Program-made: the position numbers and the translations under genes
NCBI RefSeq assembly: GCF_006345805.1
Contig: NC_043008.1
Coordinates: 5,084,001-5,148,000 of the forward strand
DNA from: Octopus sinensis
Taxonomy: Eukaryota
Length of the DNA stretch: 64,000 nt
Direction: 5' to 3'
Shown: positions 2,094 to 64,000 of the stretch, piece by piece
Position numbering within the stretch: position 1 is the first letter of the stretch
Layout: the number at the start of each line of letters is the position of its first letter
Notes under the pieces: generated by a model
The model's database searches: none
What the model was told of the DNA's origin: nothing
The model's input: the letters and a program-made list of their open reading frames with translations, nothing else

Positions 2094-5000
2094 CTGAAAA
2101 TAATGAACAGATAGTTAAATGGGTGAACAAACAGACGCATATAAATAGAATAAGAGACTGACTGACATTGCAGATACAGCAATACAAAGGTAGGCAAATA
2201 GATAGACTTATAAATAGTCTAGATGTACTTTATAAAGCATATAGTGTTGCACACACAGATACAAACACACACACACACAGTCAACATAACTTAATGGAAA
2301 GTTCAAAAGGTCAATTCATGCATTTCAATTGCCTGGTTTATTCCAAATCGGAATCCATAGCATTCTGTAAATACATATTGTTATATAACCGTTCCATTTC
2401 TTTCAGGTAACATTCTGTCAAATATTTGGGGGAGGTGGGGCTCCAAAAGGGGTCTCAGCAGGGAATAGAATCCCTGCCTTCCTGGGCTAGTTTTCCATAG
2501 GCCTCACCAAGGAAATGACTAGTGATCAAGACTTTTCAAGCGTGATCGTTACCAGCCCCCAGTCATTTGTCCAACCCATGCTTGCATGGAAAGCGAACAT
2601 TAAACGATGATGATGATTTCTTCAAAGTCGTGGTGGAGGCCTTGGTCTCAGAACCACTCATGTCTAGAAACTGAGGTTGGGGCAAGCGAGGGCATGCTCA
2701 TCATTAGAAAATCCAGCTCTGAAAAGCCTAATGACAAAAGCAAAGAAGCATGGACACCAGCCAGCCCAAAGGTTGGTATGGGCTGCCCCTGTCTACCTGA
2801 AAAAGGAAGGTGCAAACCCACATCTTGGGTCATGCAAGTATGACTTGCCTTATGATGGCCGACGGCCTGAGGAGAAGCTTGAGGTGAGGTGTGTGAAGAA
2901 TTGAGGAAGAGGAGAATGGATGTGTGCAGGAGTCTAGGTGGAGGGACCAGGGTGCAAGATTTATGGGGGTCAGGGGAAGCTGTCTGCATTCAGGGCCCAC
3001 ATCTCACTCCCATGTAGAAGTGTTGTGCATATACAAGCATGATACCTATTTCTTTACTACTAACAAGGGGCTAAACACATAGGGGACAAACAAGGACAGA
3101 CAAACGGATTAAGTCGATTACATCGACCCCAGTGCGTAACTGGTACTTAATTTATCGACCCTCAAAGGATGAAAGGCAAAGTCGACCTCAGCGAAATTTG
3201 AACTCAGAACGTAATGGCAGACGAAATACCGCTAAGCATTTCACTCGGCATGCTAACGTTTCTGCCAGCTCGCCGCCCTTTACAAGCAGGATACCATCTT
3301 CCTTTCCCTTGGAGAGAGAAACTGTTCGTAGCCAACAGAGGGCAAAGCTCTCTGACATTCTTCCATCCTATTACACTCTCCATTCATCACTACAATTCTG
3401 GTTCCCTACGTAGCAGAAATTATCTACTGCCTCTAACGAGCCACCAGGGCACTTGAGAGAGATGGTTTATGAATCGTCATCATCATCGTTTAACGTCCAC
3501 TTTCCATGCTAGCATGGGTTGGACGATTTTGACTGAGGGCTGGCGAACCAGATGACTGCACCAGGCTCCAATCTTGATCTGGCAGAGTTTCTACAGCTGG
3601 ATGCCCTTCTTACGCCAACCACTCCGAGAGTGTAGTGGGTGCTTTTTACGTGCCACCGTCACGGTGGGGGGGGGGGGCAGTCAGGCAGTACTGGCACTGA
3701 CCTTGCTCGAATCATTTTACACATGCCACTGGCACAGGTGCCAGTAAGGCGACGTTGGTAACAATCACGCTCGAATGTTGCCCTTTTACGTTCCACTGGC
3801 ACGAAGCTAGTTGGCTGCTCTGGCAATGACCACACTCGGATGGTGCTCTTTGTACCCTCCTAGCACGGATGCCAGTCATCGAATTTGATTTTGATTTCAC
3901 TTGCCTCAACAGATCTTCACAATCAGAGTTTAGTGACCAAAGAAGAAGGTAGGCATAAGTGGGCTGGTTACGCTCCTGTCATAGGCCGCAGATTATGGTC
4001 TCATTTGGCTTGCCGGATCTTCTCAAGCACAGAAGTAGAAATGAAAATAAACCCCTAATATACTCACATTACAGGCTCCATTATCACCGTTTCCAACACA
4101 AATATGTGAATTGAGGATTCGTCGTCGACCCCACCGGATGGAACATTCAGAATTACTTCTGACATGAACTTGCAGTTCTTGCAGAATGCTCTGGTCTCCA
4201 TAATCTATTAGACAGAGGATGATAATTATATTAATGAAACAATAATAAGCAGATGAGCAACATTAAACACTGATCTAGAGCCTAGCACACACACACCCTC
4301 CTTAGGAAGTGGCTGTTTGAACTTATCACTACAAGATACATTTGCCATATTCTGAACGCCTTACTTCCCCAGGCATGGATACATTGAAACTCTGACGTCT
4401 GGCAACTGACTTGGCAGACCCCCATAAAATTATTAACCATCTTACAAACAATAACTCTGAGCACCTTTTCAAACTCCATCTGTCTAACACCCATGGACAT
4501 GTTTATAAAGTCAGAAAACAGCACAGCTCCCATGACTTTCGGAAATATTTTTTCACGCTGAGAGTTGCTGAAGCATGGAACAAACTGCCGGCATCAGTTG
4601 TTAGTTGTCAGAGCAATGCATATCCTTCAAAACTTCCATGCTTCCTGAGATTCACCAACACTACACCTGATTTTCTCCCCTCCATACACACACGCAAGCA
4701 TATATCTGACTCATACATTGTTCACTTTCCAGGCATTTGTACATTACTGCATATGCTTTATACGCACTTTTGACAAGTTGTGATGCACCTGAGCACTGTA
4801 TACAATAATTTCATTATTATTATTATTTATTAAGCTGCTTCTCTTGCACATGAAGAGGTCACGGATCCAGTACTACAGACATGGGATTAAAATGTTGCAG
4901 GGAAAAAAAATCACATGACAAATTCTTCAGGCTGAGCCAACCAGTAGCAGACCTTGGGTTGAACCAAGAATGAAATGGTTGGTTAATATCCATAGTCTTA

Positions 5001-11000: not shown

Positions 11001-14000
11001 TCAACAAGCTCTTTCATTCACCAGCACTCCACAATGGCTGGCCCTGAGCCACCAACACTTTTCAATGATTTACTTTCATTTCCAAACACTACAAACATAA
11101 CTATTAATTTCTCAACACTTCAGACCAGACAAACCTTCATTCACCATTACTTTTAAGCAGTGGCTCTCAGCTGGGGTCCATATGAACCTCAGTTTCTAAT
11201 AATATTTAATCATAAAAATATAATGGGTCTTTTTTAAACATGGAATGGCTATGGAGATCCATCCAAGCGAGACAGGAATGAAAGGGATCCACAGGCAAAA
11301 AATGGTTGAAAATTACGGCTCTACAAAGATAAGCCTTCCTTTTTTAATACACTAAAAGACATGGTTAACCTTCATTTGTCAACACTAAAAAGACTAGCTT
11401 TTAGAAACCAACATTCTACAAGACTACCTGTCACTTCTCAACACTCTATTCAAGTTTAATCATTACTCGCTGGTACTCTACAAAGATTAGTCTTTATTCA
11501 GCAACGCTCTACAAAGTCACACTAATTTGATTAACCTTTAATCATTTGCACTACAAAACTAGTTTTCATTCATTAACATTGAACAAAGATTAATCCTTCA
11601 TTTTCCAACACTTTACAAAAACTTACCTTGTTTCACCAATCTTAAGAAGACTTGTCTTCATTCACCATCACTCTCCAAGTACCAGCCATCCATCAGATTA
11701 GTTACAGTCTGTTTTATTTTGTCTTCCCACTATTAACAATGACCCTTTAAATCATTTTCAGTCTATCAGACTATTTAAGGCTGCAATTTGACAGCAACGT
11801 TAACACACCGAATGAAATATACTTAATAGCATTTTGTCATTCTTAACATTCTGAGTTCAAATTCAGCCAGGGTTAACTTTGCCTTTCATTCTTTCAAGGT
11901 TGATCAAAATAAGAACCAGTTGAACATTGGGCTCAATATAATCGACTTAGCCCCTTTCCCAGACCTGTTGGCCTTGTGCTAAAATTTGAAACCAATCTTA
12001 AAGCTACTTGATCAAGGTTGGCTGGCCTGGGGCTAAATGACAACACCTTCAATCTGCTTCATCAGTGTTGATCTGGAGCCAAACATCAATGAAATTACCA
12101 GTATCCGCATCTTCATGTGAGCATGTGTATGATCAGGGATGACTTGGTACTAAACAAAAACAAGTATTTTTTTTCTTAATATTTCTTTGAGGTAAATGCA
12201 CTTTTGGGATCTTTTCTTATACCCCTTTCCTCTCTATGCATTCCTTCCATTAACAACCTAAAACTGTTCAAGTTGGCCTTCTCATAGTTCATTACAGTCT
12301 GAGAAAACTTCACTGCTGATATTTTCTTTTTCCTCAAATTGTTGATAATGTTTCATGTTATTTACAATGAAGGATAGCTATAAATGCTTCGTAAATTTGA
12401 ATCGAGGAAAAATAGTTACAGAAAAAAGAATACCAAGGAAAAGTTCAATAAACAATTAACTTAACAGGTTTTTTTTTCTTTGTTTCAGGGATTTAACATC
12501 TATGATGATGATGATGATGATGATATATATAAAATTCTTTGTCTGTCTGTCTGTTCCCTATGCATTCTCAAATGGCTCCACCAAATCAAATCAAATTTTA
12601 CAAGGTAACAATATCAGACCCCATGAGTGTCAACATGTAATTTTTTTTTATTTGGTTTAAAACAATATAACATATATAAACAATATAACGTTGCCAGTAC
12701 CGCCTGACTGGCCCCCATGCCGGCAGCACGCAAAAGCACCCACTACACTCTCGGAGTGGTTGGCATTGAGAAGGGCATCCAGCTGTAGAAACTCTGCCAG
12801 ATCAGATTGGAGCCTGGTGCAGCCATCTGGTTCGCCAGACCTCAGTCAAATCGTCCAACCCATGCTAGCATGGAAAGCAGACGTTAAACGATGATGATGA
12901 TGACGAACATTGGCACTGGTTCCGAATTATGTGTCACAAGTGAAAGAATAACATATTGTAATGTGATATGATAGTTTCATTAATTCTAATGTGATAACAC
13001 TAAGATCATCTTATTTCTATTATATTTGAAACAAATGATTATCGCAGCAAGAGAGAAGGAAGATGAGACTTTCCCACGATCAGCAAAGACATAATGCAGC
13101 ACATCAGACAGAGTCTCAAGAGAGAAGGAAGATGAGACTTTCCCACGATCAGCAAAGACATAATGCAGCACATCAGACAGAGTCTCAAGAGAGAAGGAGG
13201 ATGAGACTTTCCCACGATCAGCAAAGACATAATGCAGCACATCAGACAGAGTCTCAAGAGAGAAGGAAGATGAGACTTTCCCACGATCAGCAAAGACATA
13301 ATGCAGCACATCAGACAGAGTCTCAAGAGAGAAGGAGGATGAGACTTTCCCACGATCAGCAAAGACATAATGCAGCACATCAGACAGAGTCTCAAGAGAG
13401 AAGGAGGATGAGACTTTCCCACGATCAGCAAAGACATAATGCAGCACATCAGACGAGTCTCAAGAGAGAAGGAGGATGAGACTTTCCCACGATCAGCAAG
13501 ACATAATGCAGCACATCAGACAGAGTCTCAAGAGAGAAGGAGGAGAGACTTTCCCACGATCAGCAAAGACATAATGCAGCACATCAGACAGAGTCTCAGA
13601 GAGAAGGAGGATGAGACTTTCCCACGATCAGCAAAGACATAATGCAGCACATCAGACAGAGTCTCAAGAGAAGGAAGATGAGACTTTCCCACGATCAGCA
13701 AAGACATAATGCAGCACATCAGACAGAGTCTCAAGAGAGAAGGGATGAGACTTTCCCACGATCAGCAAAGACATAATGCAGCACATCAGACAGAGTCTCA
13801 AGAGAGAAGGAGGATGAGACTTTCCCGATCAGCAAAGACATAATGCAGCACATCAGACAGAGTCTCAAGAGAGAAGGAGGATGAGACTTTCCCACGATCA
13901 GCAAAGACATAATGCAGCACATCAGACAGAGTCTCAAGAGAGAAGGAGGATGAGACTTTCCCACGATCAGCAAAGACATAATGCAGCACATCAGACAGAG

Positions 14001-17000
14001 TCTCAAGAGAGAAGGAGGATGAGACTTTCCCACGATCAGCAAAGACATAATGCAGCACATCAGACAGAGTCTCAGAGAGAAGGAGGATGAGACTTTCCCA
14101 CGATCAGCAAAGACATAATGCAGCATCAGACAGAGTCTCAAGAGAGAAGGAGGATGAGACTTTCCCACGATCAGCAAAGACATAATGCAGCACATCAGAC
14201 AGAGTCTCAAGAGAGAAGGAGGATGAGACTTTCCCACGATCAGCAAAGACATAATGCAGCACATCAGACAGAGTCTCAAGAGAGAAGGAGGATGAGACTT
14301 TCCCACGATCAGCAAAGACATAATGCAGCACATCAGACAGAGTCTCAAGAGAGAAGGAGGATGAGACTTTCCCACGATCAGCAAAGACATAATGCAGCAC
14401 ATCAGACAGAGTCTCAAGAGAGAAGGAGGATGAGACTTTCCCACGATCAGCAAAGACATAATGCAGCACATCAGACAGAGTCTCAAGAGAGAAGGAGGAT
14501 GAGACTTTCCCACGATCAGCAAAGACATAATGCAGCACATCAGACAGAGTCTCAAGAGAGAAGGAGGATGAGACTTTCCCACGATCAGCAAAGACATAAT
14601 GCAGCACATCAGACAGAGTCTCAAGAGAGAAGAGGATGAGACTTTCCCACGATCAGCAAAGACATAATGCAGCACATCAGACAGAGTCTCAAGAGAGAAG
14701 GAGATGAGACTTTCCCACGATCAGCAAAGACATAATGCAGCACATCACAGAGTCTCAAGAGAGAAGGAGGATGAGACTTTCCCACGATCAGCAAAGACAT
14801 AATGCAGCACATCAGACAGAGTCTCAAGAGAGAAGGAGGATGAGACTTTCCCACGATCAGCAAAGACATAATGCAGCACATCAGACAGAGTCTCAAGAGA
14901 GAAGGAGGATGAGACTTTCCCACGATCAGCAAAGACATAATGCAGCACATCAGACAGAGTCTCAAGAGAGAAGGAGGATGAGACTTTCCCACGATCAGCA
15001 AAGACATAATGCAGCACATCAGACAGAGTCTCAAGAGAGAAGGAGGATGAGACTTTCCCACGATCAGCAAAGACATAATGCAGCACATCAGACAGAGTCT
15101 CAAGAGAAAGGAGGATGAGACTTTCCCACGATCAGCAAAGACATAATGCAGCACATCAGACAGAGTCTCAGAGAGAAGAGGATGAGACTTTCCCACGATC
15201 AGCAAAGACATAATGCAGCACATCAGACAGAGTCTCAAGAGAGAAGGAGGATGAGACTTTCCCACGATCACAAAGACATAATGCAGCACATCAACAGAGT
15301 CTCAAGAGAGAAGGAGGATGAGACTTTCCCACGATCAGCAAAGACATAATGCAGCACATCAGACAGAGTCTCAAGAGAGAGGAAGATGAGACTTTCCACG
15401 ATCAGCAAAGACATAATGCAGCACATCAGACAGAGTCTCAAGAGAGAAGGAGGATGAGACTTTCCCACGATCAGCAAAGACATAATGCAGCACATCAGAC
15501 AGAGTCTCAAGAGAGAAGGAGGATGACATTTTCCCACGATCAGCAAATACATGCTGCAGCACTTAATGCTGGATCATTAAATCAATGTTTTAATGATTAG
15601 ACAGAGGTCCAATGGAATAGCTCTCAGAAACAGACTACGTACAAATTCATTCTTCGCAACTGCTGCAGCTACTTTCAGATATGATCCATCCCATTCTTAT
15701 AAAAAGGATACTTTTGTCCAAATCGGTGTACTAAACACAAATTGTCATTTCTGCAAGGCTTTAAAATGAAACAAATGGCATGTGCTGCTCAGACGGTCAG
15801 GTAAGGTTGCTAGCACTACCAGCTCCTCCTCAACCTCTTATGGATCTTCTGGAAGGCACTTCCATCCAGTCAAAGGATTTTCTGAACAATATCAGACAAT
15901 ACAACTCTACACTTCAAATGACATTGTTTGGTGAATCTAAGGAGATAGTTGAACATGGATTTACACTGACTTCAAAGTTCAAGGGCAAATCTATCACCTC
16001 ATTGGTTCCCTGTTAAACACAAATGAACAGCCACAGTTCCTCCAAATTTACTTTATGAGTGTCATAGGACAACAAACCCGAAGGAGGTATCAAAACTTCA
16101 GACGATTGGTCGTGTTAGATGCAGCGGTGACTGTCACAAAGGATATCCAATGACAGCTTTTCGGTGCGTTCAAAAATCCCCCCCCCAATTTTCCATGGCA
16201 GGTTAGGACCTGGGATCCTCCAAACGGATGCATAGCATGTTGCTTAGTCAAATTAGCCCATCATTTACTCAACAAATGTTTTGTTGTCAATGCTGCACTT
16301 TGCTTTATCACCTGTTTTAATGTAACTGTAATATATTATATGCAAACTATGCCATTTGAATCCTGAGCAACGCCGGGTATCTCTGCTAGTATCAAATAAA
16401 GTGTGAAGTTTCCATATGTTATTAGATATGTATCCCCTTGTCATTGTGCACAAGCCATGTATTGTCAGTTATAAGCAACTTAAAACTGTTTAATTACTTT
16501 AACAATATTTTTTATGTAATTGAATATTTCTGATATCAATTCCTTAAGAAAGCTGGAATGTACACAACTGAAATGTTGTAAAAACAACAAGATGAGGGCA
16601 CCACTCCAAATAATGGGGATTGTCTTTATGACAGACATTAAACAACGATGATGTTGATGATGATGATGCAGCCAAATGAATTGTGAGTTTTTTTCTAGGG
16701 AAAATTGTGACATTTTTTCCATGATTATGTTTTTCCATTTACAAAAAGCTAGAAACCATAAAATTTTGTATTTTTCTTCAGTTTGTTCAAACACACATGA
16801 TGATATAAATACTTAAGAAGCAGAGAATACGAAGAAATATCAACCACAAAATTGTTGCTATCTTAAGAAAATACTTAGAAATGGTAAATGGTTTACAGGA
16901 CAGACGAAATCACTTTAAACTTGCTAAAATAATATTCAAAGCCGTTTATATGATCAGAAATATAATTACAAAGTGTTCATGCTGTCATGGTGAGAGTCTG

Positions 17001-20000
17001 ATCAAAGACTTTGTAATTGAGAAAAAAAAGGGAGAAAACTTTTTCAAATATAAATAAAGTGGAAGTATACAAAAATAAATATTATTGTCCATCTTACTGT
17101 TAGTTTTGCTTCATTATGAAAAATAAAACTTTATTTTATGGCTTATTATTGTTTATGTTTTGAATTATATCTATGATGCAAATAATCTCATGATCTGCAA
17201 CACTAACTTCAAAAAACCAGCCAGCCACCTAATCACTTATCAGTCTGGTGAGCACATAAAGCCAGATTGACTACCTCCTCACCAAGTAAAGAGATAGACG
17301 GATGCTTAAAAATGCAAAGTCTTTCCCAGGTGAAGAGTGTACAATTCAACTTCGGTTACTAGTTAGTGACTTCAGAATTAGAGCTAGAAAGACTCAGAGA
17401 AATAAACCAATCTGGAAAAGAAGACTATGGAAGCTCAAAGACCCAACAAACAGACAAAAATTTAGAGATTTATTAATGGAAGTTTCTGACAAAAGACAGG
17501 AAAAGTTGGGGACATATAGCTTAGAGGATAATTAGAAGTTCCTGCAGGACAATCTACTGAGGGCTATGGACGAAATCTGTGGTTGGTGCAGAGTCCTAGC
17601 TAAACCAAAGGGGACATTTTGGTGAAAAAAGGAGGTTGACAGTGCTATAAAAGCAAAAAGACAGGCCTGGAAAGATTGGGAAAACAGTGGAAGCAGAGAA
17701 TTATATCAGGTAGCCAAAAGGGTAGCTCGGCATCAGGTGTACATAGCAAAAGGAGTAGCTGAAGGTAAGAAATTTGCAAATGTTCTACAGTCTGAGGATC
17801 AGAGGCGTGAGGTGTTCAGGATTGCAAAGCAGTGTATCAGAGAAAATAGAGATGTGGCAGGTGAGAAATGTGTACGAATGGATAATGGTATGCTTGCACT
17901 TAGTGACTCAGAGAAGAAAGATGCATGGAAATATCACTATGAAAGGTTACTAAATGTGGAAAATGAATGGGAGGAGAGTCAACCAAATATCGAACCAATT
18001 GAGGGACCAGCCATCAGAGTTGATAGCAGCATAATAGATAAGGCAATTAAGGATATGAAGACAGGGAAAGCCCCCTGGGGCCATCAGGAATCACTTCTGA
18101 GATGATTAAAATTTCCAGTGGCATAGGATACAGCTTAGTTACCTGTATAGTTAATCAGGTTATTCAGGAAGGCTTCATCCTCAATGACTGGTGTAACAGT
18201 AAGATAGATGGCTGTTACAAGGGTAAAGGTGATGTCTTAGATAGAAACAACTACAGAGGCATTAAATTGTGAGGGCAAGTCATGAAAGTTAGTGAGAGGG
18301 TTATAGCCCAACTGATTAGAAATAGAATTAAACTAGATGAGATGCAGTTTGGTTTTACATCTGGGACGAATACCACAGATGCCATCTTCCTAGTGAGACT
18401 GCTGCAGAAAAAGTACTTGATTAAAAGTAAGCCATTGTACTTAGCCTTTGTCGACCCGTAGAAAGCTTTCGACAGAGTTCCTCACTCTGTTATACGGTGG
18501 TCTCTAAGGAAGTTAGGAGTAGAGGAGTGGCTTGTTAGAGCTGTAAAGGCCATGTACAGTGGTGCTGTCAGTAGGGTGAAAGTCGGCCATGAATACAGTG
18601 ATGAATTTAGCATACAAGTAGGGGTTCACCAGGGCTCAGTTCTCAGCCCACTCAATCATTATAGTCCTCCAGGCCAGAACAGAAGAAATCAAAACTGGAT
18701 GCCCATAGGAACTGCTATATGCTGATGACCTTGCTCTTATTGCAGAATCTTTAGTAGAATTGGAGAAGAAATGCCAGGTATTGAAAGAAAACCTGGAATC
18801 AAAGGGCCTCAAAGTTAACCTAGCAAAGACGAAAGTTGTTAGCAAGAAAGAAGATAAAACTATCATTCCATCAGGTAAATGGCCCTGCTCAATATGTAGG
18901 AAAAGAGTTGGAAGAAATTCCATTTGCTGCCCCCAGTGTAAGCTATGGACACATAAGAGGTGCAGTGGAAGCACAGGTAGATTAACAGATAAAGTCATCT
19001 TTGTATGTGGCAGATGTGCAGGAACAACAAGTACTAAGAGCACACAGGACTTAGACTCTCTCAAATGCCCAGGAGGCTCTCTTGAGGTTGTGGATGGTTT
19101 CTTTTACCTAGGTGACCAAATTAGCAATGGTGGAGGATGCTCTTAAAGTATTGTTTCTAGGATAAGAATAGAGTGAAGGAAGTTCAGAGAGCTATTACCT
19201 CTGTTGGCAGCAAAAGGACTCTCTCTCTCTCTCTCTCAGAGTGAAAGGTAGGCTGTATGATGCCTGTGTGTGAATGGCTATACTCCATGGTAGTGGGACA
19301 TGGGCTCTAAATGCAGAAGACCTGCATAGACTGGAGAGAAATGAAGGCAGTATGCTCTGTTGGATGTGCAACATCAGTGTGCATGTATGACAAAAGTGCA
19401 AATGTATTGAGAGGAAAGTTGGGCATAAGGCAAAATCAAATGTAGCATGCAAGAGAGAAGACTATGTTGGTTTGGACATGTGATGTGTATGAATGAGGAC
19501 AGCTGCATAAAGAAGTGGATGGTACCTGTGGAGGAGAGAGACTCAGGAAGACATGGGATGGCGTGGTAAGGATCGATCTCAGGATGTTGGGCCTCGTGCA
19601 GGAAATGACATTGGAGGTATGAGGTTCTTGAGAAGACCCACCCATGTCAGTGAAACTGAATTCTAGCATAACAAGAAAACTTCTCACACACTCTACCACA
19701 ACAAACCAAACTACATCTCTTCTCTTCCTCACATTTTCACTTGATGCACTATGCTTACCACCCACTCATAAATCCTGTCCTCTTGGCCCTGTCTCACTGT
19801 ATCATTGCTATCTGCTAGCCCCCGACCCGTGTGTTCCACCCACACATCACAAGCAAACTTTTCCACCCACACATCACAAGCAAAGTTTGCTTGTGATGTG
19901 TGGGTGGAACACACTAGCTCTCACTCCCCAATCCTGTCCTCATGGCCCTGTCCCTCTCTATCATTGCTATCTGGTAGCCACCTTCAACTCTATATATACC

Positions 20001-22282
20001 CAGGTTACCCCCACTCCACTTTGCATTTTTTAATCACACTTCCTTTGCAATATCCTGCCATTTATATTTTGGAGTTCAAACCTCAAGGGTATGCCCTGGC
20101 ACTTTCCACCATCTATATCCCTCTCTTCCTTTACTCAACCACCCCATTTATATTCTAATCTCTGTCCCTTGTGAGTATGCCCGGCACTTTGCTACCATCT
20201 CTATCCTGCTGCCTCTCTCTCCCTCTCTCTCTCTCTCCTGCTGCACTTCCTTCAGGTTGGGTAACCACGTATTTCCTTTGCGGCAGTGCACCTGTTTCTG
20301 TCTCCATCCCTGATCTCTCCCTCTCTCTCCAGCCAGGTAACCTTGTACCTCCTCTACATCAAGACACCTGTTTCTGTCTCTCTGCCTCACTGTAACCTTT
20401 CATCATCCAACAACAGAGCACCCCCTCCCTCTCAAAAGAGTTTTTATTTTTGTCTTGCAAGTACTTGGTGACTCTGTCAGTGCATGTGCCACTTAAAAGC
20501 ACCCAATCCACACTGTAAACCTTGCCTGTGCTTGTGCCACGTAAAAAGCACTAAGTCCACTCTGCTGGGTGGTTGGTGTTAGAAAGGGCATCCAGCTTTA
20601 AAAACCTTGCCAAAACAGTTACAGACGTCTGGTGCAGGCTCTTGTCCCACTCGTGCCAGCATGGAAGGCAGATGTTAAATGATAATGATAATGGAGATGA
20701 AAGGAGCACTGAAATTCTTTTAAGTGCTTAGGTCTTCTATGGATCTTAATCCAGCCCTGTTTTGATCCCTGTATTCATTTTATAGATCCCTATGAAATGG
20801 CTAAGATTTATCTTTTTTAAGCATAAAGGCATTCTTCAGTTTAGACAAATATACAATGCAAAGTCCATCTTGGTGATATTTGAATTCAGAACAGTGGGTC
20901 ACCCACCTAAAGACCATATAACTTGATTGTACCTCCAGTCCTTTTTAAAATTTATTTATCTATTTTTTCAGTGGTTTGGCAATGGGGTTCACCAAAATGC
21001 AATGATAATTTCTTACCCAAAAACACAATGTGCTGCGGTGATCACCCAACGTGGATGAATTAACGTTCCTCCACACACATGGCGTTTGGCCCATGTCAGG
21101 CGTAACGAAACCATCCACGGCCATTTGCCTTCCTTTGACGGGATACCTCCAACTATCATATGTGTCGTTGCAACACCACATTCAGCTGGAAAATAGAGAA
21201 GAAACAATAAGAAGTTGATTATCTGTGAGGTTTTTGGTATGTACAACTTTGATTTGTGCTGCCTTCCTCACTAAACTGACCAAACACGTTGCCTCAATAA
21301 GCAGAACATTCGTTTTGCTTTTTTATTTTAGTTTTTGCTCCTATAGAAACACTTTCTCAATGAAATGTCAATATGTCTATCCTTCTGGATAGCTATAAAA
21401 GCAACCACACCCCAAGCAAAAATCAATTAGTCACAGTCGGTGACAACAAAGTCTGGTTGACCAGCCTTGGTCAGAGAGAGAAATGAAGTTTACTGTCAGC
21501 AACTGTGGGACAATGTCGCACACCCTACAACTCTCACTAGCTCTAATTCTGATCTCTTACAACATCATTCTATCTCTCTCTGTATTTACTACTAAGCAAT
21601 GAAGAGGACACAAACACAAACTTTACTTTTGGATTTATGATAACCTGCCCGTCGAGCAACTACAAGTACTCCCAAACCTACCCATAAAGCAATGCGGAAA
21701 ATAAACACACACGCACAGAAAATAAAAGAGCTGTAAACCTAACAATGTAAAGGTAATGAAAATAGAAAATTCACAAATTCTACAAAAGTATAAGAATAGT
21801 TGGGGACATATAGCTAACCCAGTGCATCTCAACCATTTTCTGCTCATGGACCTTCTTTGGTTCCTGTTTCACTCAGAGGAATCTCCAAAACCATTCATCG
21901 GGTGGGGGTGGGGGGATCTTACTCTATTTTTATAATTAAATATTATTAGGAAGTGAATAAAATTTTAAAAAATATTTTGTGTATTGTAGAAGTAAAACCG
22001 ATTTATTGCAGATAAATTTTAGCAACAAAATCCTATGTGGTCATTTGGGCCCTGGTTGAGAATCACTGGTTTAAGGCAAACTCAGCACAAGGAAGTTGTG
22101 AGAAGTTATTTAAACTCAAGAAAGTTGCCCATATAGGATAAAAGCTAAGAAGAAAGCACCAGGAAATCATACTGGAAACTTGTAATTGTAATATTTAACA
22201 GACACACGTAGAGTGTTAGCAAAAGAATAATCATATAAATACACGCACACACACAATTAGATAGATAGGCAGATAGATAGAC

Positions 22283-22440: not shown

Positions 22441-22843
22441 ATGGATAGATAGATAGATAGATAGATAGATATGTTTCTTTATTAGCCACACAGGGCTGCA
22501 CACAGAACAAATTACAAGGTAGAGCTTTTCTTTTGAAGGTTTAAAAAAAAAAAAAAAAGAAAAAATAGGAAGGGGGAGTTTCGATCAAAAGGGATCGTAA
22601 AAGGAGAGAAAGAGGACAAAAAAAAGGGGGGTTAAAATAAAAAGGGGGAGAGGAAAAAAAAAAAAAATTGATCAATAGGGATCGTTATCACAGAAATGTC
22701 AATATGAAGTGTAAAGGGGAGGACAGGTGAGGTTTACCCGCGGAAAGAAAAGCCTACGGAAAAGACCACGGTAACCTCGGTCAATGGAGTCACATGTTTT
22801 TTTTGTTTTTTTTTAGATAGATAGATAGATAGATAGATAAATG

Positions 22844-22924
<81 letters not shown>

Positions 22925-22927
22925 ATG

Positions 22928-22980
<53 letters not shown>

Positions 22981-22983
22981 ATG

Positions 22984-23029
<46 letters not shown>

Positions 23030-23030
23030 G

Positions 23031-23083
<53 letters not shown>

Positions 23084-23114
23084 ATGGATAGATAGATAGA
23101 TAGATAGATAAATG

Positions 23115-23174
<60 letters not shown>

Positions 23175-23194
23175 CATAGATAGATAGATAAATG

Positions 23195-23226
<32 letters not shown>

Positions 23227-23252
23227 TAGATAGATAGATAGATAGATAAATG

Positions 23253-23287
<35 letters not shown>

Positions 23288-23288
23288 G

Positions 23289-23348
<60 letters not shown>

Positions 23349-24125
23349 CATAGATAGATTTGAAATAATTAAAGAAATGGGATGTTGTAACCATTTCTTA
23401 CCTTCTCCAAGTACCTCAACAGGGTATGTGAAAAGAGGCGGTTTCAACAAGGAATAGAAACTAGCTTGCAGACTTGCTTCTTCTAACTTATTAACAAAAA
23501 AGTCAAGAAATAATTTTGAAAAATAAGAGATGAAACAACAGAAATTCTTACCAATAGGGATTTGAGTTGAAAGATTGTCTTGCACAGATGTTTGCCTTTC
23601 TTTCCACTGTTGTTTTCCAGATGTAGAATATTTCCATTGCTTTGATGTAGGAGTAACGTTTGGTTGGCCTTTAATGGATTTTGATGCATGTATTGTTACT
23701 TCAGTTGTAGATACCTCTGAAGTGAGCAGGAATGAAAACCCAGAAGACGGGGAAGTACTGAGGTGTGTCACTGTAGTTTTACCGGTTACAACTGGTCTTT
23801 TGTCGTTAATTTCTGTGGAATTCATTTCCATTCTTCCGACTGTCTTGCAGTCATCCCACCTGGAACCAACTGGAACGCAGTTTGTCACTTTGTTCGACCA
23901 GATTCTGTCCATGGGACAGGGTGGCATTTGATGAGGTACGCCGTGTCCACATACAAAATACATAGAACAGTTGAAAGGATGTCGTACCCATTGCATATCT
24001 TTTGAGGTACACGGAAATTTGGCAACTGGCATGAAACGTCTACTACGCCAACGAAAGAAATATCTACGCCTTGAGCAAACGTTCAATATAATGGCTAATA
24101 ATGTTAGGGTTCGTAGAAATAGCAT
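1893..24125 (-). CDS. Secreted CBM14 (peritrophin-A) / Ser-Thr linker / S1A serine protease, 452 aa; complement join 24125-23552, 21185-21017, 10195-10090, 6357-6186, 4204-4068, 2093-1893
   Basis: Six GT-AG exons total 1359 nt with compatible phases (1,2,0,1,0). Catalytic motifs TAAHC, NDIAL and GDSGGP are intact. Has IVGG N-terminus, N-terminal hydrophobic signal peptide and a six-Cys ChtBD2 pattern. Confidence 0.93.
3047..3277 (-). mobile_element. SINE family B copy; further partial copies near 7650, 11830, 27300, 39975, 48140
   Basis: Reverse complement of the 38318 and 56025 elements. Confidence 0.88.
3478..4031 (-). mobile_element. Family A repeat, 3' UTR of the PHD-RTE LINE with (GAT)n tail; more than 15 other copies (e.g. 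8224, 9870, 12690, 20470, 32478, 36165, 36995, 40455, 44330, 47785, 55790)
   Basis: Shares CTGTGCTTGAGAAGA..GGCAAGCCAA and GGAAGGGCATCCAGCTGTAGAAAC..CCAACCCATGCTAGCATGGAAA..TTAAACGATGATG with 50760-51198. Confidence 0.85.
4068..4204 (-). CDS. Protease coding exon 5
   Basis: Not in the ORF track. Acceptor CTAATAG. Encodes [46 protein letters not shown]. Donor GTGAGT. Confidence 0.93.
4424..4830 (+). mobile_element. CR1-group LINE 3' end (about 400 bp) with (ATT)n tail
   Basis: [30 protein letters not shown]; near-identical to 33297-33703. Confidence 0.88.
5041..5880 (+). mobile_element. 5'-truncated RTE LINE (BovB-like family), RT C-terminus plus terminal Cys/His knuckle
   Basis: [36 protein letters not shown]; in-frame TGA, then CGHC..HERAC; 3' end CGAAGCCAAGCCATGA. 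Confidence 0.9.
6186..6357 (-). CDS. Protease coding exon 4: Asp102
   Basis: Acceptor ATTCCAG. Encodes [19 protein letters not shown]...ACIP...[10 protein letters not shown]. Donor GTAAGA. Confidence 0.95.
6720..9050 (+). mobile_element. Patchwork of very old RTE-like LINE remnants
   Basis: Degenerate similarity only (HYGH..RM..ARRIL; IMSLRVP; KQDWFD), fragmented and interrupted. Confidence 0.4.
8654..8832 (-). repeat. About six inverted units of the same 31-bp minisatellite
   Basis: Units such as AGTGTTGTTGAGTAAAGACTAATTTTTCCAA are reverse complements of the 10218-11690 units. Confidence 0.7.
10090..10195 (-). CDS. Protease coding exon 3
   Basis: Acceptor TATTTCAG. Encodes [35 protein letters not shown]. 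106 nt bridges phase 2 to phase 0 exactly. Donor GTATAT is weaker. Confidence 0.85.
10218..11690 (+). repeat. Highly degenerate ~31-bp minisatellite (consensus about CTACAAAGACTAGTCTTCATTCACCAACACT)
   Basis: Recurring CTACAAAGA..AGTCTT..CAACA(C/T)T periodicity. Confidence 0.75.
11158..11318. mobile_element. Shorter relative of the 21820 MITE, opposite orientation, interrupting the 31-bp array
   Basis: CAGTGGCTCTCAGC terminus; right end similar to the reverse complement of 21820-21895. Confidence 0.55.
12499..16389 (+). mobile_element. Internally deleted Helitron with both termini
   Basis: Inserted between A and T. 5' end TCTAT...ATATATAAAA, 3' hairpin CCTGAGCAACGCCGGG plus CTAG. Remnant of the Helitron N-terminal Zn-finger region ([51 protein letters not shown]). 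Confidence 0.9.
13048..15548 (+). repeat. 69-bp tandem minisatellite, about 36 near-identical copies, encoding [23 protein letters not shown]
   Basis: Unit CAAGAGAGAAGGAGGATGAGACTTTCCCACGATCAGCAAAGACATAATGCAGCACATCAGACAGAGTCT, no spacers, scattered 1-2 nt indels. Confidence 0.97.
17183..19650 (+). mobile_element. Decayed RTE-type LINE (APE C-terminus, RT, PHD-like insert)
   Basis: SQIDY motif, [38 protein letters not shown], and CSIC..CPQC..H..C..CGRC insert. Confidence 0.9.
19771..19979. repeat. 50-bp direct repeats flanking a direct-plus-inverted triplication
   Basis: Direct repeats 19771-19820 and 19930-19979; inverted arms 19829-19858 and 19885-19914. Confidence 0.9.
21017..21185 (-). 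CDS. Protease coding exon 2: activation site and His57
   Basis: Acceptor TTTTCCAG. Encodes [28 protein letters not shown]...[20 protein letters not shown]. Donor GTAAGA. Confidence 0.95.
21820..22068. mobile_element. hAT/Charlie-like MITE
   Basis: Termini CAGTGCATCTCAACC / GGTTGAGAATCACTG; no clean TSD. Confidence 0.65.
22260..22470. repeat. (GATA)n microsatellite with AAATG interruptions
   Basis: Direct reading. Confidence 0.97.
22471..22814 (-). mobile_element. Probable non-LTR retroelement 3' fragment embedded in (GATA)n
   Basis: Pyrimidine-rich UTR-like sequence ending GCCCTGTGTGGCT-AATAAA-AGAAACAT then (ATCT)n. Confidence 0.45.
22815..23358. repeat. (GATA)n microsatellite with AAATG interruptions
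   Basis: Direct reading. Confidence 0.97.
23552..24125 (-). CDS. Protease coding exon 1: signal peptide, [12 protein letters not shown] segment, CBM14 domain, S/T-rich linker
   Basis: ATG at 24125. Cys spacing C-x13-C-x5-C-x10-C-x12-C-x9-C fits peritrophin-A. Donor G|GTAAGA at 23551; the listed ORF beyond it runs into GATA repeats. Confidence 0.9.
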
Positions 24126-32100: not shown

Positions 32101-33296
32101 CTGTCGCATCTTCTTCTGTTCTATGCTGTCTGTGTTTCCGTTCAGCATCACAACGATCTTTCCTGGCAAGTTGAACTGCTACAGCCTCCCATATTGCACT
32201 GTTTTTATTTCAAGAGCGTTTGCACAGCACTGACACTTCACATGCAGCCCAGATTGCTCTGAGGATCATCATCATCATCATCATTGAATACTATCTTGCT
32301 TCATACCTATGACTGTCAGGTTGTTTGATGCTCTTCCAATTAAGATATAATTTCTTTAGGATACAAGGAAGCCTACATGCGGCTAGTCAATCAACTAGAG
32401 ATAGTAGCCAAATCTCCTTCTGACAACTATTTTAAAATAGGAAGAACACATAAGATAATGTAGTTACAGTTAAACTATCATCATCATCGTTTAACGTCTG
32501 TTTTCCATGCTAGCATGGGTTGGACGGTTCGACCGGGGTCTGGGAAGCCAGAAGGCTGCACCAGGTCCCATACTGATCTGGCAGTGTTTCTACAGCCGGA
32601 TGCCCTTCCTAACGCCAACCACTCCATGAGTGTAGTGGGTGCTTTTTATGTACCACCGGCACAGGTGCCAGGCGAAGCTGGCAACAGCCACGATTGGTTA
32701 GTGCTTTTTACATGCCACTGGCACGGAAGCCAGTCGAGGTGACGCTGGCATCGGCCACGTTCGGATGGATGTTTTTACGTGCCACCGGCACAGGTATCAC
32801 AACTACAATTTCCATTTGATATTTATTTTGATGTTGATGTACTTGACTCAATAGGTCTCCTCAAGCACAGCAAGTCATGTTCCACTGGCACAGAAGCCAG
32901 TCAAGGCGGCGCTGACATCGGCCACGTTCGGATGGTACTTTTTACGTGCCACCAGCACAGGTATCAAAACTACAATTACTTCATAGAAGCTATTTGGTGC
33001 CTAGCTCACCAGACAGATGACCCTGGGCATTTGAGCAGATGGCTTTGCACTTTTGTACAGACTCTCCCAGTCAGCAATTGTATCATTAACATCTTTCATT
33101 GTAAATAGCCAACACATAATATAATTTCTGGTAATATATATTAAAGTTAAAGTTTAATTTCAGTTATTATTCACACAGCTAACACATCTCACACCACTAC
33201 AGTAGAACACCAACAAGCACATCACAGCAAGAGTAAAGATGCAACCCACTGCGACAATGGTGACACAAGACATTCACATTATATCATTGACTACCT

Positions 33297-35811: not shown

Positions 35812-38035
35812 ATATATATATGTGTATATATATATATATATATTATATATATATATGTGTGTGTATATATATATGTGTGTGTATATATATATATATATAC
35901 TGCAAATATTCGAACAGAACTACAAAGAAAGAAAAATAATTTTAAAGCTTCCAAAACATATACAAATGACACACACACACGCATATATATATATGTGTAT
36001 ATATATATATATATACACATACGCGCATATATATATATATGTGTGTGTGTATATATATATATATACACATACGCGCATATATATATATATACACACACAT
36101 ATATATATTTAATTGTTCATTTTGAATTGATAAAAGGTGGTTTTTCTAATTTCTATATATATATATCATCACCATCGTTTAACGTCCGTTTTCCATGCTA
36201 GCATGGGTGGGAGGCTGCACCAGGCTCCAACCCGATCTACCAGTGTTTCTACAGCTTGATGCCCTTCCTAACGCCAACCACTCCGTGAGTGTAGTGGGCA
36301 CAGGTGCCAGGGAAGGCTGGCAGCGGCCACGATCGGTTGGTGCTTTTTACGTGCCACCTTCACGGAAGCCAGTCAAGGTGGCGCTGGCATCGACCACGTA
36401 CAGATGGTGCTTTTTACGTGCCACCGGCACAGGTGCCAGGGGAGGCTGGCAATGGCCACGATCGGTTGATGCTTTTTACATGCCACCAACGTGAAATTTG
36501 ATTTAGTATTTCTAAATTAAATTTTTCCCTGTAAGTTTGGAATAATATTCCCTCAAATTATTATTATTATTATTATATATGTGTGTGTAGTGTGTGTATA
36601 TTTATATATGTATATATACATACACACAGGAGCAGCTTGGTTACCAACCACATGGTTCCAGGTTCAGTCCCACTGCGAAGCACCTTGGGCAAGTGTTTTC
36701 CACTAAAGCCTTGGGTTGACAAAAAAACCTAGATGGAAACTGAAAGAAGCCCATCGTATATGTATATGTGTGTGATTTTGTGTGTCTGTGTTTGACAACC
36801 GTTGCTGGTGTGTTTATGTTCCCGTAACTTAGTGGTTCGGCAAAACAGACCGATTGAATCAGTATTAGGCTTACAAAGAATAAGTCCTGGGGTCGATTTG
36901 CTTGACTAAAGATGGTACTCCAGCATGGCCACCGTCAAATGACTGAAACAAATAAAGGAATATGTGTGTGTTATGTGGTCACTTACCATATCACATCATT
37001 ATCATCGTCGTTTAACATCCACTTTCCATGCTAGCATGGGCTGGACGGTTTGACTGAGGGCTGGCGAAGCAGATGGTTGTACCGGGCTTCAATCTAGATC
37101 TAGCAGAGTTTCTACAGCTGGATGCCTTTCCCAACGCCAACCACTCCGTGCGTGTAGTGGGTGCTTATTACGTGCCACTGGCACAGGTGCCAGGCAAGGC
37201 TGGCAACGGCCACAATTTCAATTTCACTTGCCTCAACAGGTCTTCACAAGCAGAGTTTTGTGTCTCAAGAAGGAAAGGTATGCATAAGTGGACTGTTTTC
37301 ATGATTTCACAGAGGTCCAAGACAATAGTTCTGAAAAACAGACTATGTACAAATACGTCAATCATCACAACACATCTTCACATCATCCAAATAGACCAGT
37401 TTCACCTGGGCTTAGCTGCTAGTATGAATATAATAAAGTAATACTGTTTCATATGGCTTTGTGATGCATCAATAACTTTTCTTTGTTTTTCTTATTTGCA
37501 GTCGCTTCATCATCAACATCCCTCAAGAAGAACGACTTAATCCCATCCGAATATTCTTCCAGATAGAACTTGCTCACTGGTTCTATTTAGATTTCTATTG
37601 TATAGAGAATCCAGATTTGCATACATGTGGAATCAAAGACTTTTCCTCACAAAGTATCCTTTTCATTGACTGAAATAATTTCCTGCTGGTGGTTTATATA
37701 TATATATATATAAAATTAAATAAGGGTAGAAATTGATATTAATCAATTAAAATCAGTGGCCTAGCATATTCTAAAAAAATCCAAAGATTAAAAATTGTTT
37801 TACATACAAAATTTAGAGGATTGACCACTAAAAGTGGACAGCCTATATGCTAGATATAGACGTCAAATTGCTATTTTCCACAAAGAATGTGTTCTCAAGA
37901 AAAAACTCAGCAAAAACCAAAGTGTAAAACCAAAGTGGTTTTTTCTTGAGAACACATTCTTCGTGGAAAATAGCGATTTGACTTCTATATCTAGCATATA
38001 GGCTGTCCACTTTTAGTGGTCAGTCCTCTAAATTT

Positions 38036-38104
<69 letters not shown>

Positions 38105-41100
38105 TTTAATAACAGTTTGACTCAGTTCCACAGGACCTAAAGATTCATGAGTATGTTGTCCATCTTATTAGATGTTTGGAGGCAGAGCAGAGGGTTTGAA
38201 AGAAATTTTTGGTGTTTTTAAGCTTCTGTTAGTCAATTTCTGTTGTGTCGTATTAATGCTGTCAAAGCATACTTTCTATTGAGTACCTCACGTGGTGGAG
38301 TAAGATGTTAGTGTGAAAAGGTGGCAAGCTGGCAGAAACGTTAGCACACTGGGCGAAATGCTTAGCGATATTTCGTCTGACGCTATGTTCTGAGTTCAAA
38401 TTCCGTCGAGGTCGACTTTGCCTTTCATCTTCTTGGGGGCGATTGAATAAGTACCAGTTATGCACTGGGGTCAATATAATCGACTTAATCTGTTTGTCTG
38501 TCCTTGTTTGTCCCCTCTATGTTTAGCCCCTTGTGGGCAATAAAGAAATAAGATGTTAGTATGAATCAGTAGTGCAGTTATTGTTCAGTGGAATTTGAAT
38601 ACATTAGTGGAAGCCTTTTTTACATAGGCACTGACACTCCAGGCATACCACCCTAGGCCTAGTTGACCCACACTCAAAGGCAGGGTATCTAATCTCTTCC
38701 ACCATACTCTACAGCCCATCCATGTTGGTCACACAACATCAGTTGCCACCCAGCATCTTTTAAAATGACTAAACCCAGGTAATGACTGCTGTGGCTAATG
38801 TTTTCAAACTCTACTGAATGATGGCTAAACTACTGTCTCATGCCAACAGCTTATCCTACCACATTTAGTGCCCAATACCTTGGGTCATACATATCATCAT
38901 CTGAAACAATGGAATTTACTATGTTATGCCAGACTTCACAGTCTATCATAGCATTACGGAGGTCCTATTGCTGGATGCCTGTATCCCTGGAGATTACATC
39001 AGGGTAGGAGAGTGTGCGCCCTCTGCTATCGCAAGCAGATGGCTTCCAGAGGAGAAGAGTAGAAATTACCTCGTTTTCAGCTCTACAACAATGTCCAGCA
39101 AACTGGACTCTTCTACCTTTCACAAGAGATGATACAGGTGGTAATTTCCCATATATTTGTACTTTGGTTGGATGATGCTTCCATGAGAGATTTTGAGCTG
39201 TTATAAGGAGGCGAGTGTAAGTTCCATCCAACCACCTCTCAAGCTTCTTTGATAACGTCCAGGTTTCTGAGCCATATAGTAGAATTGGTTCGACTGTAGC
39301 TTTGAAGATTTTAAGTTTGAAATCTCTACTTAGATTTGATGACCAGATCTTATGCATATCATTACAGGCTGACCTGGCCATACCCTTTCTAGTTAGAAAA
39401 TCTTTTCTAGATGATGATATGTATGACCCAAGATATTTGTAATCAGAAACCATATTTAAGGGCGCATTGTTGAGAGTATGGATGATGCAATCACTGTTGG
39501 ACAGGCACTTGTTTACATATTCAGTCTTGGACTCATTGAGGTAAAGACCTACACAATTTGAGGCTTGTTCAAGAGATTGTAAAAGAGACTGCAGTGCCCC
39601 AGCATGGCCACATTCTTATGACTGAAACAAGTAAACTTCAATTTATTTCTTCCTTTATCACTGATGTGTGTCTGCTGTATGTAATTCATACTTTATTGCA
39701 TAAGAACTGACCAACTTAATCCTTGACCAGTATTTTAGTATTTCGCCACTGCCCATTTCTCAATCAGTATGCCGAAGAAGTGGACAAACGGTTTGAAGAC
39801 TGGAAGCAGTATAAGATGAGCGTTCCCACTTACGGTGCCATTATTTTGGATCCTGAGATGAAGTTTGTGAGTGTCACCACTTTAAAAGCATATTTCTGTT
39901 GTTTTTTTTTTAGGTTGTAATTTTTTGGAAAGCTGGCAGAATCGTTAGCATGCTTGATGAAATGCTTAACAGGTGGCGAACTGGCAGAAATGTTAGCACA
40001 CCAGGCGAAATGCTTAGCGGTATTTCGTCTGCCGTTACATTCTGAGTTCAAATTCTGCCGAGGTCGACTTTGCCTTTCATCCTTGCAGGGTCGATTAGAT
40101 AAATACCAGTTACGCACTGGGGTTAATTTAATTGACTATTCCCCTCCCCCAAATTTCAGGCCTTGTGCCTATAGTAGAAAAGATTTTGAAATTTTCATTT
40201 CTTGGTCTGTCTCTGATCCCCAAACATTGTTTAGTCTCGTGTTGGGCCCCAACCAAGCCAACCTATATCACTTAACCACAACCTCCTAGGCATTACATGC
40301 AACATTATATAACCCCTACTTCATTCTCCCTCTCTCTCTCCTTAACCCTGTTGCTCCTCTACAACAAGAACCTGCTGTTCCCCAAACTCTTTTCTCATAC
40401 CAAAATCCCCTCCTAATACACAGATGTAGCATCCTCCCTCCCTGGGTTTGTTGACTTGCAAGCCATGTGGCAGCCTCAGTCGTGCCAGTGGCATGTAAAA
40501 GCACCCATTAAAGTGGTTGGCATTAGGAAGAGCACACAGCTGAAGAAACCATGCCAAAGGAACCACTGGAGCACAATGCAATCCTTTGACTCATCAGATC
40601 CTTGTCAAAGCCATTCATCCTCAGCCAGCATGGAACATGGATGTTTATTAAGCGATGATGATGATTAAATTACCTAATGTGTCCTTTTTCAAGGAAAAGA
40701 GGACTTATTGGTCAACCTGGTCTGAGCTACACAATACTTGACAACAGAATACTTGTTTTGTTTTTGGATTTGGTTTGCAAGATTCTTTATATGAGTTCGT
40801 GTGTTGAAGTATATTCTGTTGTGTCTGGGGAGAGTCATTTTCTTTTTGTGCCTTATAATGTCAAGACTATTGAAAAGGTTGCAAGACGCAATGAAAATTT
40901 TAGGAAAATAAAAATAAGAAATAAGTGGAAATGTTACTGGTGAGTGTGTTACATTATAAGGCACAAAAACAAAATGACTCTCCCCAGACACAACAGAATA
41001 CTTGTTGTTTCTGTATTTTGTCTACTGCTATGTTCTGAGTTCAAATTCTGCTGAGGTTGACTTTGCCTTTCATCCTTTCGGGGTCGATAAATTAAGTTCC

Positions 41101-63844: not shown

Positions 63845-64000
63845 TATCAGGTCATCCCATAAGTTCTGTCCAAACTTTGAATCAAGAAATCAAGTGATCA
63901 AATGTTATACTTAATTGAAATTTAATCATCAATGTACTTTCCCTGATTTATCAATGACTTCCTTCCATCTATTTACAAGCTTTTTAATCCCATCTATGTA
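63845..64000 (-). mobile_element. End of a second, different mariner-type element (continues beyond the window)
   Basis: Transposase C-terminus YIDGIKKLVNRWKEVID..GKYIDD* (one frameshift); terminus TA-TCAGGTCATCCCATAAG differs from the first mariner's TIR. Confidence 0.75.

Follow-up and report, generated by a model that had tools for sequence, protein, structure and literature searches.

The DNA considered here is a stretch of 64,000 nucleotides from Octopus sinensis (NCBI RefSeq assembly GCF_006345805.1, contig NC_043008.1, positions 5,084,001 to 5,148,000, forward strand), which we call the window; positions are counted from its first letter. On its plus strand it contains a truncated Helitron, in which a long tandem array of 69-bp units, each of 23 codons that we assign to the STPR family of DNA-binding repeats, stands directly before the recognisable N-terminal region of the transposase. 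The features of this element, together with a second remnant of the same family, are the following.

12499..12534, plus strand: left (5') terminus of the Helitron, TCTAT(GAT)7ATATATAAAA preceded by A, aligning with the 5' ends of the relatives L001 and L004.

12541..12564, plus strand: conserved left-end block, (GTCT)3GT then TCCCTATGCA, found in the same order in L001 and L004.

12689..12903, plus strand: insertion resembling a short interspersed nuclear element (SINE), with a (GAT)n tail, in the Helitron leader; 18 or more further copies or fragments lie elsewhere in the window (66-92% identity).

12904..13047, plus strand: AT-rich spacer with an acceptor-like end, ...ttatttctattatatttg...ttatcgcag (from three-frame translation).

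13048..15562, plus strand: 69-bp tandem array (Tandem Repeats Finder, TRF: period 69, 36.8 copies, 97% matches, 1% indels, score 4792).

15502..15570, plus strand: degenerate last unit, the unhomogenised edge of the array (from unit splitting and translation).

15602..15766, plus strand: linker (RQRSNG...SFF..AA.F.YDP) and the CxxC half of a Zn-finger-like motif, frame-shifted relative to the last array units.

15768..16010, plus strand: segment of the transposase N-terminus, CC..G.V.L...PP.PL...IRxYNS...TSFG, in a third frame (tblastn, 62% identity to the predicted protein P0002).

15965..16117, plus strand: segment ending in FLQIYF, at which the recognisable Helitron homology stops (weak similarity runs on to 16228).

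37294..37371, plus strand: second remnant of the same Helitron family, 78 bp, 79% identical to the linker at 15586-15660.

A single array is reported by TRF at 13048-15562, and with head-to-tail units of 69 bp, 36.8 copies and 97% matches it is a minisatellite in the usual sense (unit of 10-100 bp, high identity between units). Cut at the GAGTCTC anchor, it yields 35 complete units, 21 of them exactly 69 bp long and 19 mutually identical; the complete units of other lengths have only one to three bases deleted each. Its 5' edge is a 63-bp partial unit, and its flanks are clean and unique on both sides. The 30-nt core of the unit has 33 matches in the window at up to three mismatches, all within the array, and none in 100 shuffles. 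In translation the unit is 23 codons, open in one plus-strand frame, with the consensus E1 S2 Q3 E4 R5 R6 R7 M8 R9 L10 over its first ten positions and an ATG in every copy; the strict 23-residue tandem period is that of STPR proteins, and the longest open stretch in this frame is 173 aa (14118-14639). The openness of the array does not by itself argue for coding, because three of the six frames of the unit are stop-free and the longest open reading frame (ORF) across the array, of 314 aa, is on the minus strand. The reading frame is fixed by homology, because tblastn of 269 Helitron relatives (see below) matches the array only in the plus-strand ESQERRR frame and never on the minus strand.

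Compared with its own consensus, the array shows 19 deletion events of 1-2 nt, no insertion and no private substitution. The sole substitution, G20A, changes Arg7 to Lys (R7K, codon AAG) and is common to five units, of which four belong to the first ten and the fifth lies close to the 3' end. Were indels half of all real mutations, 19 indels and zero substitutions would be seen with a chance of 2e-6. Ten of the 19 deletions fall within the 15-nt purine tract of the unit, against 22% expected (binomial p = 0.003); an earlier note on this DNA, which placed the indels mostly in purine runs, was thus roughly right, except that they are all deletions. The adjacent non-repeat Helitron segment has three frameshifts in about 420 bp, a density like that of the array, and its three stretches of homology (55, 81 and 51 codons) are all free of in-frame stops. 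In the corresponding 69-bp arrays of four relatives the units differ from one another by 5-12% substitutions and 0% indels; the window contains no other long-period array with which the deletion bias might be checked internally. Because the spectrum consists of deletions only, without insertions or private substitutions, we think that most or all of the frame-breaking deletions are probably consensus errors of a long-read assembly, as the earlier note had suspected, and such deletion-only noise flags a locally unpolished stretch of it.

Directly 3' of the array, at 15602-16117 and spread over three frames, lie the CxxC...CC motif and the IRxYN, FKVQGQVYH and FLQIYF blocks by which a Helitron N-terminus is recognised (in the window CxxC...CC...IRxYN...FKVQGQIYH...FLQIYF), so that TRF and translation both confirm an array with a 23-codon unit directly upstream of this region, as first described. 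The spacing between the repeat motif and the CC motif is about 94 residues. When a 78-residue piece of this segment (15780-16013) was compared with 1.84 billion representatives by phmmer, 766 matches were obtained at E <= 0.001. The coding region ends about 110 residues past the Zn-finger-like motif, and the plus-strand homology ends (at about 16117-16228) upstream of the place where Pfam Helitron_like_N starts in the relatives (residues 414-543). No Pfam match to Rep (HUH) or Helitron_like_N was found on the window pieces, and tblastn of the relatives detected no Rep or PIF1 helicase homology on the plus strand anywhere downstream in the window. The loss of Rep and helicase from the element that bears the array, already supposed, is therefore borne out. 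Helicase homology occurs in the window solely in a second, minus-strand Helitron fragment at 61825-63851, in which Rep and PIF1-helicase homology extends over several frames and whose N-terminus would fall beyond the window end. The 78-bp remnant at 37294-37371 adjoins a copy of the SINE-like repeat.

The left end of the element can be recognised by comparison. An A at 12498 is followed by TC (12499-12500) and TAT, in agreement with the insertion of Helitrons with a 5' TC after a host A, and this terminus, which is interrupted by the (GAT)7 microsatellite, is homologous to those of L001 and L004. Both of these relatives have TCTATATATATAAAG at their left end, after an A in L001 (position 55) and after a T in L004 (position 1270); a (GTCT)n or (GTTT)n tetranucleotide tract comes next, and then YTATGCA. 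The pattern of the family is thus TCTAT...ATATATAAAA...(GTCT)n...CTATGCA, and positions 12499-12564 of the window, 55-125 of L001 and 1270-1325 of L004 share TCTATATATA(T)AAA, a short spacer, the tetranucleotide tract and YTATGCA; the similarity of the block is modest and was judged by eye and from a MAFFT alignment. L005 was rejected as a further sharer of the TCTATATATA left end, which it does not have. The earlier note spoke of a TCTATATATAAAA end: this literal string is absent from the window, and the real 5' end is the one just described, at 12499-12534. A single one-mismatch match to TCTATATATAAAA, at 37703, lies inside a (TA)n run and was discarded. No right end (CTRR with a hairpin) was recognised at 16117-17400 in a search made without a family consensus. 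A candidate, CTGCTAGT at about 16385, was rejected, since the weak similarity between this region and the copy at 37.4 kb apparently extends beyond it; in the comparison with this 37.3-kb fragment only the 78-bp match was significant, with no homology found past 16230.

The leader is also damaged. In the relatives it measures about 800 bp and the proteins start with MPPKRK; in the window about 340 bp of non-SINE sequence precede the array, and three-frame translation of 12400-13047 revealed neither a start codon of the MPPKRK type nor a first exon. Codon 3 of an STPR unit is split in L001 by a phase-1 intron (1108-1162), and in the window (13040-13050) it is likewise with codon 3 of its unit that the array begins, immediately behind the acceptor-like ...ttatcgcag. 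Because the array opens at the very codon where the L001 intron interrupts its unit, this arrangement suggests that the array may be an expanded second exon whose first exon was lost, with the qualification that the intron phases of L001 and of the window do not match exactly. The SINE-like repeat inserted in the leader, about 215 bp long, is represented by at least 19 copies or fragments in the 64 kb, among them those at 3474-3696, 32477-32671, 36996-37208, 47777-47965, 50984-51200 and 55790-55960.

The comparison with related Helitrons is what gives the array its meaning. We examined 269 retrieved relatives for STPR repeats, most of the close ones being from eukaryotic contigs in metagenome or Logan assemblies. 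In many of them the motif E[ST]xExRxxRL recurs every 23 residues exactly and is followed after 71-98 residues by the CC motif; there are 3-10 copies per relative versus 36.8 in the window: three to four repeats in P0002, four in P0005 and in P0128, five in P0110, eight in P0153 and, counted by eye, about ten in P0152. The unit of the window is 43-49% identical to those of its two closest relatives, P0002 and P0005. In BLASTP the 173-aa ORF of the window aligns gap-free and in register with P0002 (48% identity over 108 aa, E 6e-19) and with P0005 (43-46% identity, E 1e-17), these E-values being inflated because repeats are not independent. Four window units can likewise be aligned without gaps with the blocks of L003 (P0002) and L001 (P0005), and E1, S2, R6, R9, L10, D13, H17 and A20 are then common to the aligned sequences in no fewer than three of the four repeats, and E4 in the first. 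The repeats of these relatives agree with the array of the window in both position and reading frame. In L001 the STPR-bearing ORF is directly followed by a 545-aa Helitron_like_N ORF, and Pfam STPRs (PF21107) and PF14214 occur together in one predicted protein in P0152, P0153, P0160 and P0222 (the last from Octopus bimaculoides), among others.

In four relatives the STPR region is also a 69-bp tandem repeat at the DNA level (L001 1213-1483, L003 543-781, L004 2127-2463, L005 1943-2500), with 3.5-8.1 copies, 88-95% identity and 0% indels. Because units are more alike within one element than between elements, these arrays are probably homogenised continually, by unequal exchange or conversion. 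We regard the STPR-coding repeats of the relatives as a case of concerted evolution of the putative DNA-binding module of a transposase, with the frame preserved. The link to known Helitron transposases is direct, P0128 and P0005 matching the solved bat Helitron transposase Helraiser (7lcc_A) in phmmer at 1.4e-14 and 1.2e-25, respectively. These alignments begin at residue 13 (P0005) or 24 (P0128) of Helraiser, and in that of P0128 part of the STPR region pairs with the Arg/Glu-rich N-terminus of Helraiser, which may be a degenerate derivative of the STPR module. A match of residues 171-236 of P0096 at 60639-60836 in the window was set aside, being due to a mariner-like part fused into the prediction and not to its STPR region.

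Is the unit of the window really an STPR? Known STPRs have a strict 23-residue period with conserved Glu1, Thr/Ser2 and Arg9 (PMC4856987). All three of these residues are present in the unit, as are Glu4, Arg6 and Leu10. The Helitron relatives score 14.6-51.6 bits with the Pfam model PF21107 (gathering threshold 27 bits; 119.7 bits for FMBP-1, the positive control), and eight individually scanned relatives exceed the threshold: P0128 (51.6), P0120 (49.8), P0010 (42.7), P0005 (36), P0152 (35.1), P0222 (31.2), and P0110 and P0153 (28.6). Several of the passing relatives also bear Helitron_like_N, and of the 60 relatives in which the CC motif is preceded by at least 110 residues, ten match PF21107 at E <= 0.001. 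P0128 matches the solved STPR domain of FMBP-1 (5d23_A) at 1.3e-7. Against a profile of Pfam-confirmed Helitron STPR units, P0002 being excluded, the unit of the window scores 12.0 bits, which only one of 2000 composition-preserving shuffles reached; with a profile of FMBP-1 alone its score is 5.6 bits, a value that 12 of 2000 shuffles attained. A profile of four-unit blocks from the window, L003 and L001 retrieved FMBP-1 as its only match among 177,635 PDB sequences, in register, although weakly (E 0.012, 19 bits). AlphaFold2 predicts for four units helices at residues 3-23, 26-46 and 49-91, with breaks at Glu1-Ser2 at two of the three unit boundaries (mean predicted local distance difference test score, pLDDT, 86.5; predicted template-modelling score, pTM, 0.38); a Foldseek search of the PDB with this model gave no match and was uninformative. 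The assignment of the unit thus follows from its homology to the relatives, and not from its own profile score, and on this basis we consider it a divergent, presumptive fringe member of the Helitron branch of STPR repeats. For annotators this means that STPRs of the Helitron type are to be expected at or below the Pfam threshold.

Taken together, these data make it very probable, in our opinion, that the STPR-coding repeats of an HLE1 RepHel transposase were recently amplified in an element that is now a relic, and that the deletions in them are probably errors. The array unit would derive from the native 23-residue module of the N-terminus of the Helitron transposase, present in 3-10 repeats of 69 bp in related elements, and unequal exchange or replication slippage would have raised this number to about 37 (a mechanism that we infer). 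The last amplification must have been very recent, because the array contains no private substitutions. The host element would have decayed, its left end being split by a microsatellite, its leader receiving a SINE, its start codon and first exon disappearing, and its Rep and helicase going missing; it is from this truncation and context that we conclude to a relic. The array is the extreme of the homogenisation process seen in the relatives, and today it most likely persists as a neutral, non-coding minisatellite that arose from coding sequence. The idea of a recent, homogenised expansion of the RepHel STPR module, put forward in the earlier note, has therefore held up well.

Several observations weigh against this interpretation and should be kept in mind. 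The relatives compared all come from other genomes than the array, and both the copy number and the deletions are those given by the assembly. None of four window peptides matches PF21107 at E <= 10, and a single-sequence phmmer search of the PDB with four units found no match to FMBP-1 at E <= 10. The comparison with an STPR profile proposed in the earlier note thus gives, with the Pfam model, no match for the unit itself and matches for several of its relatives. In FMBP-1, R6, R9, L10, Y16 and R20 contact phosphates and M13, S14, A17 and L21 make hydrophobic contacts (PMC4856987). Only R6, R9 and L10 are kept in the window; the six other contact positions of the nine (M13, S14, Y16, A17, R20, L21) are occupied by D, Q, R, H, A and H. 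The pattern had been said to fit at every conserved position, and this is true of the N-terminal half of the signature and not of the C-terminal contacts, positions at which the Pfam-positive Helitron STPRs also differ from FMBP-1. Finally, should all the deletions be errors, the array could be read through into the Zn-finger region as one open frame of about 1000 codons.

Among the alternatives, the one that survives best is that the length of the array, or the array itself, is an artefact produced by the assembly of noisy long reads, the true locus having only a few units like those of the relatives. The deletion-only noise indeed shows poor polishing, and errors of copy number are common in tandem arrays. 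However, the array has an ordered structure that would not be expected of an artefact: the R7K variant is confined to five units (four of the first ten and one towards the 3' end), the last unit is degenerate, and the sequence on either side is clean and unique. Long-read assemblers, besides, are usually off by a few units and not ten-fold. We therefore consider this explanation rather improbable.

Still less probable, we think, is a working gene, or mobilisable cargo, whose product, once the errors are discounted, would have about 850-1000 residues, among them 36 STPR helices and a Zn-finger-like motif. Such a gene would agree with a deletion spectrum suggesting that the frame breaks are technical, with the ATG in every unit, with the three downstream segments free of in-frame stops and with the AlphaFold2 model of one helix per unit, broken at Glu1-Ser2 with a mean pLDDT of 86.5; solved STPRs moreover bind AT-rich double-stranded DNA along the major groove, at 4 bp per repeat (PMC4856987). 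If it existed, its product could cover DNA over long distances, or else occupy Helitron left ends in competition with the transposase. Yet a start codon and a first exon are both missing upstream, the downstream segments are in three different frames and their homology stops before Rep, the left end is split by (GAT)7, and the right end was not found. The zero divergence between units, too, fits a neutral recent expansion. Nor did sequence collections help this hypothesis: the 173-aa ORF found no homologue at E <= 0.01 among 5.8 billion clusters, nor any protein of 95-303 aa with the array unit, in a search that is weak because it depends on a word index (shared 5-residue words and similar length are needed) and that missed P0002 (BLASTP 6e-19). 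An exact-match scan of metagenome and viral contigs with the 28-nt core of the unit also returned nothing, so that the unit was not found in these collections. The suggestions of the earlier note that the array could be carried along by Helitrons and might be translated into a long, modular protein that binds DNA find no support: the assembled sequence has about 19 breaks of frame, the left end is interrupted by a microsatellite, and neither a start codon upstream nor a right end was found.

A more speculative possibility concerns the function of the module in the family. An AT-rich left terminus with a 4-bp period (TCTATATATATAAA then (GTYT)n) is seen in the window, in L001 and in L004, and since solved STPRs read 4 bp per repeat, the STPR module might recognise it. 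Concerted evolution would then have tuned the number of repeats to TCTATATATATAAA+(GTYT)n, and the 36-unit locus, cleared of assembly errors, would be an ORF for a long STPR protein, which could wrap about 144 bp of DNA and serve the family as a decoy or repressor. We mention this as an idea to which we give little credit at present. As for the view that the unit is a charged, helix-forming, low-complexity repeat that resembles STPRs by chance, it could invoke the absence of Pfam STPRs and Foldseek PDB matches and a C-terminal half unlike that of FMBP-1, and it is already largely refuted, and most improbable of all, given the gap-free, in-register alignment to the P0002 and P0005 repeats at the same position in homologous proteins, the single shuffle in 2000 that reached the profile score and FMBP-1 as the only PDB match of the family profile.

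We return to the recent amplification of a transposase module, in order to ask how much of it is new. The HELIANO study of 2024 counted Pfam STPRs as one of 20 domains that Helitron-like elements stably contain, found them almost only in HLE1 and placed them with the domains encoded in an ORF separate from RepHel (PMC11417382). Since STPRs had thus been reported in HLE1 Helitrons, and proteins with PF21107 and PF14214 are public, the novelty implied at first is lower than it seemed. The STPRs of HLE1 RepHel resemble those of the window in their position upstream of CxxC...CC, their frame, their 23-residue (69-bp) period, their E-S/T-x-E-x-R-x-x-R-L signature and their homogenisation within each element; they differ in that the window has 36.8 copies instead of 3-10, a unit below Pfam detection, and a copy without start codon, Rep or helicase. 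What is new is the hyper-expansion of the STPR-coding repeats, that is, their copy number. As a side point, it is also new that in relatives studied here STPRs share one predicted protein with the Zn-finger-like motif and Helitron_like_N, in contrast to the separate ORF of HELIANO.

Two other systems deserve comparison. Bombyx mori FMBP-1 (5d23, 5d2q, 5d2s) and ZNF821 have in common with the unit of the window the 23-residue period, Glu1, Thr/Ser2 and Arg9, as well as Glu4, Arg6 and Leu10; the unit is basic, and one helix per repeat is predicted for it. FMBP-1 differs in having four repeats, and positions 11-23, with the six contacts named above, are not conserved in the unit of the window; 178 STPR proteins surveyed have 3-7 repeats each (PMC4856987). 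Satellite-like arrays are known inside non-autonomous Helentron elements of Crassostrea gigas (PMC7492417, PMC8268682). Like the array of the window, they lie inside a rolling-circle transposon, vary in copy number and illustrate a possible route from transposon to satellite DNA. They are, however, non-coding central repeats present in many copies, whereas in the window a part of the transposase coding sequence was amplified, in one observed instance and within an element whose right end was not detected.

The rest of the window contains other mobile elements and host genes, and this content (trypsin, a peritrophin-A chitin-binding domain, mariner, non-LTR and Helitron elements) would by itself indicate an invertebrate animal. 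A frameshifted non-long-terminal-repeat (non-LTR) retrotransposon occupies about 17300-19150 (plus strand), with a weak RVT_1 match on the ORF at 18760-19146 and reverse transcriptase-like translation upstream of it; a PHD-finger-like C-terminal ORF follows (PF00628, 24.6 bits). A mariner-like transposase remnant at about 60600-61500 (minus strand), with a DDE region and a helix-turn-helix part, adjoins the second Helitron fragment. Host genes are represented on the minus strand by an exon at 21013-21246, the start of a trypsin domain (PF00089, 54.6 bits), and by a 463-aa ORF at 22734-24125 with a peritrophin-A chitin-binding domain, whose open frame crosses a (TAGA)n microsatellite read as (YLSI)n. 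Finally, a 184-bp tandem repeat at 41028-41745 (3.9 copies, 82% identity) may represent tandemised SINE heads, since a tRNA-like motif of the GTTCNNNTTCAAATCC type occurs in its unit.

The array is one dead copy and, taken alone, of little biological weight. It is nevertheless a clear example of how the modular DNA-binding repeats of a transposase can turn into a minisatellite. Since the repeats evolve in concert in each element (with 88-95% identity between units and no indels), the repeat number of this DNA-binding module is an evolvable trait.

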